Assembly (NCBI RefSeq): GCF_000400465.1
Contig: NW_008806285.1
Location: 240,001-272,000 of the forward strand
DNA: 32,000 nt
DNA from: Wallemia ichthyophaga EXF-994
Taxonomy: Eukaryota; Fungi; Basidiomycota
Direction: 5' to 3'
Part shown: positions 21,100 to 24,101 of the stretch, piece by piece
Layout of the letters: every line of letters begins with the position of its first letter
How positions within the stretch are numbered: the stretch's first letter is position 1
The notes under the pieces: model-generated
Told to the model about the DNA's origin: nothing
The model's input: only the letters and a program-made list of their open reading frames with translations
Database searches by the model: none
Made by a program: the position numbers and the translations under genes

Positions 21100-21236
21100 A
21101 ATGACCAAATGTGTTTTGTAAATCTTCCAAAGGAAAAGAAAGCAGCCAACAAATGCCAAGGATCAAATGGATGAAACTGAGTTTACAATCATGTACGTAA
21201 GTTGAGTAGATCGAAACCTGAGAAACGACGCTAAGT

Positions 21237-21622
21237 TTAATCAGCGTGAACATCACGGAGACGACGGATGGTGCTGTGAAAATGGTTAGCATATCATTGG
21301 AATCACTTAAGATCACTCCACCCACCTACGGACAGTGGTTGCTGCTGGAGTAGCCAAAGCATAGGCACCACCTGCAATAACCTTACGACAGGCCTTACAG
21401 TTCCAGATACCGGTAGCGGTACGCTTTACTGAATCTTTACCACAGAAGGTGCATGTGTAACGTGCGTGCTGTGAGATTTCCATCTTTTTTACTTGCTTAC
21501 GCAAGGAAGCACCATAGCGGACACCGTATTTTCCTGTGACACCGACCTTACGAGTACCTGTGGGCGTATACGATTTGAGTGGTTGCACTTAATTTAAATA
21601 TATTTCACTAACGCTTGACCAT
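21237..21622 (-). CDS. RPL43: 60S ribosomal protein eL43 (L37a), 92 aa, 3 exons
   Basis: [26 protein letters not shown]-x2-C zinc knuckle CTFCGK..WNCKAC, TVRSTIRRLR; exons 21622-21613, 21557-21326, 21273-21237. Confidence 0.98.
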
Positions 21623-22026: not shown

Positions 22027-23141
22027 ATGGGTGCCAACAAGATCGAGAAAGAGAACTACTTCAACCGTCTCCAAGAGCTCATTGAGACGTACCCATCCAT
22101 CTTCATTGTCAACATCGACAACGTGTCTTCCAACCAAATGCACCAGATCCGTCAAGCCCTCCGTGGCAAGGGTCAAGTGCTTATGGGTAAGAACACCATG
22201 GTCCGTAGAGCCTTGAAGATTTTCATCCAATCAAACCCACAATACGAGCGTCTTTTGACACACGTTAAGGGTAACATTGGTTACGTCTTCACCTCTGGCG
22301 ACTTAAAGGACATCAGGGACATCATTGTCGCCAACAAGGTCAGAGCCCCAGCCAGAGCTGGTCTCTACTCACCAGAAGATGTCTACATTCCTGCTGGTAA
22401 CACTGGTATGGAGCCAGGTAAGACTTCTTTCTTCCAAGCTCTCGGTGTCCCAACCAAGATTGCCCGTGGTACCATTGAAATCATCAGTGACATCAGAGTT
22501 GTTGAGAACAACACCCGTGTCGGTGCTTCTGAGGCTACTTTGCTCAACATGCTCAACATCTCTCCATTCACCTTCGGTATGACATGTGTGCAAGTTTACG
22601 ACAACGGTCAAATCTTCTCACCAACTGTTCTCGATGTCACTGAGGAGACTCTCATCGGCAGATTAATGACCGCTGGTAACCAAATCGCTGCCATCTCATT
22701 GGCCATCAACTACCCAACCTTGCCAGCAGCTATGCACTCGTTCATCAACTCATTCAAGAACATCATGGCTGTTTCTGTTGCAACTGACTACACTGTCAGC
22801 TACACTGAAAAGGTGAGTCTATTAAGCGCTCTATTCTTATGGCGGTCAGTTCTACGTGATGATTTCTTACTTATGTCAACACTGAAAATTCTTACACTGA
22901 AAAGTGGTGGTGAAAAACCAAGACGGGTCGCTGACTAGAACCCCGCCATGAGGAAGCGCGTGTGCTCATGCACTAACGCTAACACGATACACAGGTCAAG
23001 GACATGATCGCCAACCCAGATGCGTACGCTGCTGCTGCCCCAGCTGCTGCCACTGGTGGTGAAGCTGCCCCAGCTGCTGAGGAGAAGAAGGAGGAGGAAG
23101 AGGAAGAGGATGAAGACATGGGTCTCGGTCTCTTTGACTAA
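22027..23141 (+). CDS. RPP0: 60S acidic ribosomal protein P0 (uL10), 310 aa, 2 exons
   Basis: VLMGKNTM(V)[30 protein letters not shown]-terminal [13 protein letters not shown]; exons 22027-22812 and 22995-23141 with a 182-nt intron. Confidence 0.98.
22849..22941 (+). ncRNA. Intronic box C/D snoRNA in RPP0 with a guide complementary to 25S rRNA (U21/SNORD21-like antisense element)
   Basis: Box C GTGATGA 22856-22862, candidate D' CTGA 22882 or 22897, C' GTGGTGA 22907-22913, box D CTGA 22931-22934. Terminal stem GTTCTA/TAGAAC plus outer stem ATGGCGG/CCGCCAT. The 12-nt guide CAAGACGGGTCG (22919-22930) is antisense to LSU rRNA CGACCCGUCUUG. Confidence 0.9.
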
Positions 23142-23285
23142 ACTGTTTGAAGAGCGTTTATTGTACTATGAATGTTTTGCTGCAGTAATGAAAAGTGTGC
23201 CCGGTTTTTTTTGTGTGTCCTAAACGTTGTATTTGTTAACAATCGAATCTCCACATTGTGCTGCCCTTGCTCACTATCAATCAGG

Positions 23286-24101
23286 ATGCCCAACCCCACG
23301 CAACAATCGTACCGAATCAGAAACTGGGAAATAAAGACGCAAAAGTCGACGATACCTTCAATGCCCGAAAGCGACGCCTTGGCTGCTGAACTCGGGATCC
23401 CAATACCAGAGATGACATTCCTATCGAGTGGAGTGGAGGTGCTAGACACAGATAGCGGATTTAAGTTAAGTTTCAATGCGCGTGATGCACTACGTGGAGT
23501 GAGCAAACAGAATGAATTGAGGGTATCTTACGCCGATCACTGGCGAAGCAGTCGACAACCGCACGAAGCATCCACCATACAGCCTAGTCAGCCATGGGAC
23601 TGGACTTACAGTACGACATACAGCGGCAGCACAGAAAGTGAAAGAGCACACTGGCAGCCCATCCCCACCACTACACCAGTCATTCCCATCGATAAACTCA
23701 GTGACACCACCCAGCCTATCCTCTTCTACGACGATGTGCAACTTTACGAAGACGAACTAGGCGACAACGGTCAAGTAGGTCTTAATGTGAAAATACGCGT
23801 TATGCCTTTCGCTTGGTTCATCCTTCAGCGCTTCTTCCTCCGTGTGGATGACGTCCTCTTTCGCATGTACGACGTGCGCGTTTATCACGATTTCAGCGGC
23901 AATGTCGTCTCGCGTGAGTGTGCGGGCTGGGAGGCGGGTTGGGAGGCTATGAAGCAGTGTCTGCCCCCTCATACACCTAACATTCTTTCAGATGAACCTG
24001 TCATCCAGGCAACGCTGCGCACTATGGAGAAATACAACACGCATACTAATTGCACGCAATGGAAGGGACTGGGGTGTGTGAAGGAGGTGTGTGAGTTGTG
24101 A
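23286..24101 (+). CDS. TIP41: TIP41/TIPRL PP2A-family phosphatase regulator, intronless
   Basis: LGIPIPEMTF, FNARDAL, WDWTYSTTYSG, IPIDKL, PILFYDDVQLYEDELGDNG, VKIRVMP, RFFLRVDDVLFRMYDVRVY. Confidence 0.95.
   Translation: MPNPTQQSYRIRNWEIKTQKSTIPSMPESDALAAELGIPIPEMTFLSSGVEVLDTDSGFKLSFNARDALRGVSKQNELRVSYADHWRSSRQPHEASTIQPSQPWDWTYSTTYSGSTESERAHWQPIPTTTPVIPIDKLSDTTQPILFYDDVQLYEDELGDNGQVGLNVKIRVMPFAWFILQRFFLRVDDVLFRMYDVRVYHDFSGNVVSRECAGWEAGWEAMKQCLPPHTPNILSDEPVIQATLRTMEKYNTHTNCTQWKGLGCVKEVCEL

Follow-up and report, generated by a model that had tools for sequence, protein, structure and literature searches.

A candidate two-guide box C/D snoRNA in the RPP0 intron of Wallemia and a predicted ribose methylation site in 25S rRNA

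The RPP0 locus and its intronic snoRNA

We analyzed a stretch of 32,000 nucleotides from the extremely halophilic basidiomycete Wallemia ichthyophaga EXF-994 (contig NW_008806285.1, positions 240,001 to 272,000 of the forward strand; G+C 45%), hereafter the window, in which the gene for the ribosomal stalk protein P0 (RPP0) occupies positions 22027-23141 as two exons and a single intron. Within this intron lies a putative box C/D small nucleolar RNA (snoRNA) with two guides for 2′-O-methylation of 25S ribosomal RNA (rRNA). The guide beside box D is predicted to direct methylation of the equivalent of yeast C637, while that beside the internal D′ box points at the equivalent of yeast U2724. The spliced RPP0 product (310 amino acids) was exactly identical to W. 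ichthyophaga EXF-994 protein EOR00397.1, an origin that the G+C content of the window also fits, and homologues of the product carry the Pfam domains Ribosomal_L10/RL10P_insert. The position of the intron was common to the RPP0 genes of W. hederae, W. mellicola, Schizophyllum, Tulasnella, Fomitiporia, and Daedalea. Additionally, a transcript-like contig of 1,098 nt (L011), 98.5% identical to W. mellicola, had the orthologous intron removed precisely at the predicted junction, from which it follows that the RPP0 intron is truly spliced in the genus.

The element showed the anatomy of its class (Table 1), with an RUGAUGA-type box C near the 5′ end and a CUGA box D near the 3′ end, joined by a terminal stem. 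Folding recovered both of the nested stems, outer and inner, which together form a duplex of -25.8 kcal/mol. Both boxes of the internal C′/D′ pair were present and both were degenerate, and their assignment is backed by alignment with the CTGA and UGNUGA boxes of relatives and by covariation, their activity being a prediction. The original prediction, made from the letters of the window alone, had placed a C/D snoRNA with two nested terminal stems at 22849-22941 in the RPP0 intron, and the boxes, stems, and guide were indeed located there. Its description of clear C, C′, and D boxes was borne out for C and D, which are canonical, but not for C′, which has the degenerate form GTGGTGA; moreover, it overlooked the D′ guide for the Um2724 equivalent (Am, Cm, Gm, and Um here denote 2′-O-methylated nucleotides). 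Two other CTGA motifs were considered as D′ boxes and rejected. The one at 22882 is part of the conserved antisense core and would pair with rRNA UCAG, while that at 22897 falls within the linker hairpin, is missing in W. mellicola, and had no rRNA complementarity of the kind required.

The D guide and its predicted 25S rRNA target

The D guide, CCAAGACGGGTCG, directly adjoins box D, and the fifth base upstream of the box, G22926, is the middle G of its GGG. Bases 22919-22930 (12 nt) are antisense to 25S CGACCCGUCUUG. Specifically, against a fungal large subunit (LSU) ribosomal DNA (rDNA) sequence, L019 (...CAGCGACCCGTCTTGAAACACGG), all 12 bases paired without interruption in Watson-Crick fashion (12/12), which put the middle C opposite position 5, and the next-best rRNA matches reached at most 9 bp, wobbles included. 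An rRNA antisense element of at least 10 nt ending at or beside box D or D′, as expected of the class, is thus present at box D. The two strands of the window together have roughly 340 CTGA sites, and no other site combined an rRNA antisense element of at least 10 nt with an upstream box C; the 16-mer was present once in the window. The D guide and its box C/D arrangement are not a chance pattern.

With the fifth base upstream of box D opposite the middle C, the canonical rule predicts methylation of the middle C in CCCGUCUUG, the yeast C637 equivalent. In yeast numbering, the duplex covers the equivalents of 633-644 and ends just before A645, the site of 1-methyladenosine (m1A). The literature places the target of vertebrate SNORD21 (U21) at human 28S Gm1316 (G1303 in older numbering). 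Human Am1326 corresponds to yeast Am649 (which the literature pairs with Am1313, again in older numbering), so that the target G of SNORD21 becomes yeast G639, and position 5 of the Wallemia guide, lying two bases 5′ of G639, falls on the C637 equivalent. Hence the earlier claims on the guide all held in these comparisons: that it immediately precedes box D, that its +5 position (22926) lies on the middle C of CCC, that it addresses the same rRNA stretch as vertebrate U21, which methylates the G, and that two extra bases shift its target relative to U21.

Methylation at this C was sought among other organisms. In human, no 2′-O-methyl is listed between Am400 and Gm1316, and in Arabidopsis none is listed between G399 and A661, while only Am841 and Am844 are listed in the target stretch for Dictyostelium, and the C637 equivalent is not among the predicted targets of Neurospora crassa. 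Yeast is not known to have a 2′-O-methyl at C637. A full-text literature search, by obvious names, for a methylated C at the equivalent position returned nothing relevant. Likewise, a metagenome scan for CAAGACGGGT-N0-2-CTGA found at least 120 loci, and among the matches listed all were rDNA or chance occurrences in mostly bacterial contigs, with no snoRNA-like context. Judged by these comparisons, 2′-O-methylation at the C637 equivalent would be new as a prediction.

The rDNA references used herein, L019 and the non-fungal eukaryotic L055, were recovered from metagenome contigs. The small subunit (SSU) rRNA in L019 (1989-4150) spans 2,162 nt relative to a model of 1,831 positions and so probably contains inserted sequence, for instance a group I intron.

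Conservation among Wallemia lineages

Orthologous introns were compared from W. hederae (L136), W. mellicola (L137, L138), and an AT-rich Wallemia-like fungus (L001-L010, hereafter the L001 species). The latter was abundant over many samples of one metagenome series (ENA assemblies 'KERN20-1_SAMEA54100xx-54103xx', Logan run ERR3209915), and its RPP0 protein was ~87% identical to that of the window. Exon DNA identity among the Wallemia lineages was ~84-88%, and that of the intron flanks ~40-55%. The D guide of W. ichthyophaga matched those of the other three lineages at 13/13, 11/13, and 12/13 positions, and box D at 4/4 in all three, the four lineages sharing CC[A/G]AGACGGGTC[G/T]-CTGA in the same register. 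Inside the guide only one base differs: W. mellicola has G in place of A (CCGAGACGGG), and as the target base there is U, pairing is retained as a G-U wobble. The remaining variation is at position 1, adjoining box D, which is G in W. ichthyophaga and W. hederae and U in W. mellicola and the L001 species. Furthermore, the spacing of GGG, TC, one base, and CTGA was constant in all four lineages, such that position 5 is always the middle G.

The terminal stems behaved differently from the guides. Each of the four lineages had a stem closing boxes C and D, but the sequences were wholly different: the arms read GTTCTA/TAGAAC in W. ichthyophaga and TACTCTC/GAGAGTA in W. hederae, and were AT-rich in W. 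mellicola and the L001 species. Thus, boxes and guides were conserved while stems underwent compensatory change, across the four Wallemia lineages and the four Agaricomycetes described below. Such retention of guides and register alongside replaced stems marks selection acting on the structure of an RNA and on a pair of antisense elements.

Alignment of the boxes over the eight orthologues showed box C as ATGATGA in W. hederae and W. mellicola and as xGGATGA in the L001 species and Schizophyllum, with GATG invariant (8/8). Three of the Wallemia lineages (W. ichthyophaga, W. hederae, and W. mellicola) had CTTA as D′ box, and the L001 species shared CTGA with the four Agaricomycetes. We observed that D′ position 3 (22893) and C′ position 4 (22910) covary across the family (window, L136, L137, L001, L012, L015, L139, L140). 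Specifically, three Wallemia lineages combined G at C′ position 4 with U at D′ position 3, the L001 species, Tulasnella, Daedalea, and Fomitiporia (where the C′ box is TGCTGC) combined C with G, and Schizophyllum combined U with G. These two positions normally form the second sheared A-G pair of the C′/D′ motif; here they always held a pairable combination. The covariation supports the C′/D′ box assignment and suggests, by alignment, a non-standard and slightly unusual internal kink motif.

In the L001 species (L001 3804-3879), the assigned box C, AGGATGA, is preceded at ~30 nt by a second box-C-like AGATGA, and the Rfam snR67 model gave a full-length sub-threshold match (24.6 bits) from that AGATGA to the D′ box, rendering the 5′ end of the snoRNA ambiguous in this species.

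The D′ guide and the Agaricomycete orthologues

The D′ guide has as its core ACACTGAAAAT (22879-89), complementary to 25S around U2724, and A22886, the fifth base upstream of the D′ box, points at the U2724 equivalent. The literature assigns 25S Um2724 to the yeast snoRNA snR67. The guide ACACTGAAAATT and its D′ box were in a register identical to that of CACUGAAAAUU-CUGA in the snR67 model, and the 3′ guide of the Rfam model, CAAACACUGAAAAUU-CUGA, gave weak local matches exactly over the D′ guide. The core was invariant in all eight basidiomycete orthologues. At 22879-22882, W. ichthyophaga is without two bases (AC) that are found in the other three Wallemia lineages (CAACACACTG; L136, L137, L001). 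Based on the conservation of the core beyond Wallemia, the guiding of Um2724 appears to be the older function of the RPP0-intron snoRNA.

RPP0 introns of other basidiomycetes, where the original prediction had proposed to look, were informative on this point. The RPP0 genes of Schizophyllum commune, Tulasnella sp., Fomitiporia mediterranea, and Daedalea quercina had an intron at the same codon position, and each contained a C/D snoRNA. These share with the Wallemia RNA the host gene, the intron position, the order of boxes, the D′ guide ACACTGAAAAT-N-CTGA, the D′-C′ hairpin, and the UGNUGA C′ box, the hairpins being located in the same place with other sequences (e.g., GCGCC/GGCGC, CGTC/GACG). 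In contrast, the CAAGACGGG guide is missing from them, a canonical CTGA serves as their D′ box, and their D-side spacers are short and species-specific (Table 1). The motif ACACTGAAAATNCTNA was present in 17/17 RPP0-intron loci and in 0/123 other loci compared. Membership of this basidiomycete group can be described by a phase-0 intron before VKD/VKE codons, a D′ guide ACACTGAAAAT-N-CT[G/T]A, and a UGNUGA C′ box, all of which were found in the Wallemia RNA. The Agaricomycete RNAs are its true orthologues.

The C637 guide was not found in the orthologous snoRNA of the four Agaricomycetes. Their D-side spacers, searched against rRNA references without the 3′ third of the fungal LSU, produced only matches of 8-10 bp with wobbles, and hence we treated them as non-guides. 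The Ustilago RPP0 had no intron, and a motif of the ACACTGAAAATNCTNA type was not found at the RPP0 locus of Microbotryomycetes. The guide was thereby supported as lineage-specific, as first proposed, its register being kept in four Wallemia lineages and the guide missing in four Agaricomycete orthologues, while methylation is still a prediction. The simplest reading of these distributions is that Wallemiomycetes and Agaricomycetes inherited an RPP0 intron with a single-guide Um2724 snoRNA from their common ancestor, and that the D-side spacer of this RNA would have turned into a second guide in the Wallemia lineage. Canzler et al. describe lineage-specific second targets as common in fungal snoRNAs.

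Genomic neighborhood

The neighbors of RPP0 in the window are TIP41 (23172-24101) and, on the minus strand, a PCI/PSMD12-like gene. The order of neighbors was the same in W. hederae, and in W. mellicola the locus was compared up to TIP41. The L001 species departs from the other three Wallemia in having the complex I 51-kDa subunit downstream in place of TIP41, and an aminotransferase upstream. At 21230-21620, on the minus strand of the window, lies a multi-exon ribosomal protein gene, recognized by position and synteny; the gene upstream of RPP0 on the opposite strand in both W. hederae and W. mellicola encodes a ribosomal protein of the L37ae family. A crude test (CTGA plus an rRNA 10-mer) revealed no snoRNA in the introns of the gene at 21230-21620. 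Finally, a gene for U2 spliceosomal small nuclear RNA was identified in Schizophyllum commune (L012 3668-3856, minus strand; 110.5 bits, E 7e-22), ~530 nt downstream of RPP0.

Table 1. Features of the RPP0 gene and its intronic snoRNA in the window, and the D-side spacers of Agaricomycete orthologues.
Feature	Organism	Positions	Strand	Basis
RPP0 (uL10/P0) exon 1	W. ichthyophaga	22027..22812	+	translation; spliced product and homologue domains
Host intron, 182 nt, phase 0, GTGAGT...CACAG	W. ichthyophaga	22813..22994	+	sequence read directly
Outer (precursor) stem, 5′ arm GGCGG	W. ichthyophaga	22841..22845	+	folding
Inner terminal stem, 5′ arm GTTCTA	W. ichthyophaga	22849..22854	+	folding
Box C GTGATGA	W. 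ichthyophaga	22856..22862	+	sequence and alignment with relatives
D′ guide GTCAACACTGAAAATT	W. ichthyophaga	22875..22890	+	snR67 model guide match; core kept in 8 orthologues
Degenerate D′ box CTTA	W. ichthyophaga	22891..22894	+	alignment with relatives
D′-C′ linker hairpin CACT-GAAA-AGTG	W. ichthyophaga	22895..22906	+	folding
Degenerate C′ box GTGGTGA (family consensus UGNUGA)	W. ichthyophaga	22907..22913	+	alignment
D guide CCAAGACGGGTCG	W. ichthyophaga	22918..22930	+	rRNA antisense; conserved in Wallemia
Box D CTGA	W. ichthyophaga	22931..22934	+	sequence; invariant in Wallemia lineages
Inner terminal stem, 3′ arm TAGAAC	W. ichthyophaga	22936..22941	+	folding
Outer (precursor) stem, 3′ arm CCGCC	W. 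ichthyophaga	22944..22948	+	folding
Branch-point motif CACTAAC	W. ichthyophaga	22971..22977	+	inside RPP0 intron
Branch-point motif GCTAACA	W. ichthyophaga	22978..22984	+	inside RPP0 intron
RPP0 exon 2, including stop codon	W. ichthyophaga	22995..23141	+	translation
D-side spacer TCTATACCCTTT	Schizophyllum
D-side spacer ACCCTTCTGC	Tulasnella
D-side spacer AACCCTTTTAACCCTT	Fomitiporia
D-side spacer TCCATGATTTCTGTTCT	Daedalea

Probable function of the two guides and alternative explanations

We consider it probable that the element is a functional, intron-encoded box C/D methylation-guide snoRNA with two guides, an ancestral one for Um2724 and a Wallemia-gained one for C637; its anatomy, complementarity, and conservation with compensatory change were observed directly, while expression, assembly into a small nucleolar ribonucleoprotein (snoRNP), and methylation are what we infer from them. 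Following established snoRNP biology, the snoRNA would be transcribed within the RPP0 pre-mRNA, and the nested terminal stems would unite boxes C and D in a kink-turn that recruits Snu13, Nop56, Nop58, and the methylase Nop1/fibrillarin, with an RNA of ~85-95 nt being trimmed from the spliced intron. The D′ guide, ACACUGAAAAUU followed by CUUA, would pair around the 25S U2724 equivalent and place that U at the fifth position. The D guide, CAAGACGGGUCG followed by CUGA, would form a 12-bp duplex with 25S CGACCCGUCUUG, presupposing GACCCGUCUUG at the target place in Wallemia 25S, with the middle C of CCC at the fifth position, and this C, not the neighboring G of SNORD21, would receive the 2′-O-methyl. 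The second guide would have arisen in Wallemia from a spacer that is variable and has no recognizable guide in Agaricomycetes.

Several observations weigh against this account. The D′ box CUUA and the C′ box GUGGUGA both deviate from consensus, making the activity of the D′ half less certain in W. ichthyophaga, and box C of the L001 species deviates from consensus at position 2. The D′ target was examined through the snR67 model and the literature only, L019 ending before the U2724 region and L055 being too diverged there, and the pairing of the D guide was checked on L019 and L055, LSU sequences from another fungus and a non-fungal eukaryote. Moreover, a few snoRNAs, including some yeast guides, methylate position 6 in addition to position 5, so that the exact methylated nucleotide is not guaranteed.

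This last point bears on an explanation that we regard as unlikely, namely that the snoRNA is real and its D guide serves other than to methylate C637, either as a folding or assembly chaperone or by modifying a neighbor (C638 at position 6, or G639). Such a role would accord with the C637 equivalent being unmethylated in every organism checked, and with a duplex that adjoins the m1A645 position, where interplay with base methylation is conceivable. However, the guide abuts a canonical CUGA box D and is accompanied by a canonical box C and terminal stem, which is the setting where the fifth-position rule is most reliable, and the exact two-base spacing was held in four lineages, suggesting that register matters; for G639 a shift of two positions would be required, for which we saw no precedent. 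That the conserved block is no working snoRNA at all, being instead a decaying relic or a sequence kept for a role in the RPP0 intron or its splicing, with a coincidental rRNA match, would fit the degenerate C′/D′ boxes and the lack of an Rfam family at gathering score. We judge it very improbable given the perfect 12-nt antisense exactly at box D, the preservation of both guides and all boxes between barely alignable intron flanks, the terminal stems maintained through wholesale compensatory change, and the same RNA in the same intron of Agaricomycetes and Wallemia.

A further explanation concerns the restriction of the site to Wallemia rather than the function of the RNA: other fungi may methylate the same C by means of a different, undetected snoRNA, and in Wallemia the guide would simply have been transferred to the RPP0 snoRNA. 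Movement of guides from one fungal snoRNA family to another is known, and according to Canzler et al. the Um2724 guide is located in different families by lineage, three in number; basidiomycete snoRNAs have been catalogued almost only by homology to ascomycete ones. The other basidiomycetes herein were, furthermore, covered at their RPP0 loci alone. Yet no such target is listed for N. crassa, Arabidopsis, Dictyostelium, or human, the literature search named no methylated C at the equivalent position, and the guide-plus-box-D scan of metagenomes gave rDNA and chance matches among those listed. We find this explanation unlikely. Returning to the two-guide snoRNA with a Wallemia-gained C637 guide, its farthest-reaching form would be that Wallemia ribosomes carry a genus-specific 2′-O-methylcytidine at the C637 equivalent, beside the m1A645 position at the base of expansion segment 7, created when a single-guide snoRNA gained a second guide in an extreme xerophile/halophile lineage, a proposal that we see as evenly poised between being right and wrong.

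If this proposal were true, it would represent a clean, datable birth of an rRNA modification site, possibly tied to ribosome stability at low water activity. The gain of the guide is well bounded, since Agaricomycetes and Wallemia have this RNA in the same intron but with one guide and two guides, respectively. The stretch of rRNA that contains the predicted site is universally conserved, and the site itself lies beside a conserved m1A and two bases away from that of vertebrate U21. For Wallemia, the locus provides a direct, inexpensive prediction for RiboMeth-seq. Surveys by homology to ascomycete snoRNAs are blind to lineage-specific guides such as the Wallemia D guide, and the RPP0-intron family adds a provider of the Um2724 guide in basidiomycetes. 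The understanding of C/D snoRNA mechanism is unchanged.

Comparison with known snoRNA families

Rfam searches at gathering thresholds, a check that the original prediction had proposed for SNORD21 and the fungal families, gave no match to any family in the window, and at E<=10 the 231-nt region returned only weak, sub-threshold matches to snR47, snoR53Y, and snR67, with none to SNORD21. The early label 'U21-like' therefore stood for the overlapping target and not for the RNA as a whole, which has no SNORD21 match and has the backbone of the basidiomycete family. U21 resides in an intron of RPL5, likewise a ribosomal protein gene, and its pairing continues across AAA, while the Wallemia guide halts before A645. 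The two RNAs are alike in a D-side guide antisense to the same universally conserved LSU stretch, CCCGUCUUG, and in box C/D-guided ribose methylation. Unlike SNORD21, the Wallemia guide has two extra bases (UC) between GGG and box D, which put position 5 (G22926) on the middle C, two bases 5′ of SNORD21's G; additionally, there is no covariance-model match or other sequence or structure similarity beyond the guide, the host gene is different, and the Wallemia RNA also bears the D′ guide for Um2724. The shared target region is best attributed to convergence of the two RNAs on an accessible, conserved part of the rRNA rather than to common descent.

Yeast snR67 (RF01177; Gm2619 via D′, Um2724 via D) has a near-identical element, ACACUGAAAAUU, directly before a D-type box and in matching register, with the same predicted target, U2724, which the Wallemia guide likewise puts at position 5. 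In snR67, however, the element is on the D side, whereas in Wallemia it is on the D′ side, and the Wallemia RNA is without the Gm2619 guide and lies in the RPP0 intron. Scores were 16.0 bits (local) in the window and 24.6 and 21.5 bits in relatives, relative to a gathering score of 55. Another partial counterpart is Nc CD49 of Neurospora crassa (snR54 family), which is similarly an intron-encoded C/D snoRNA that guides the U2724 equivalent (26S-Um2682) and has an unrelated second guide, although its Um2724 guide is on the D side, its other guide aims at 18S Am971, and no similarity was detected. Collectively, the sequence comparisons assign the Wallemia RNA to the basidiomycete RPP0-intron snoRNA family defined here, which is absent from Rfam 15.

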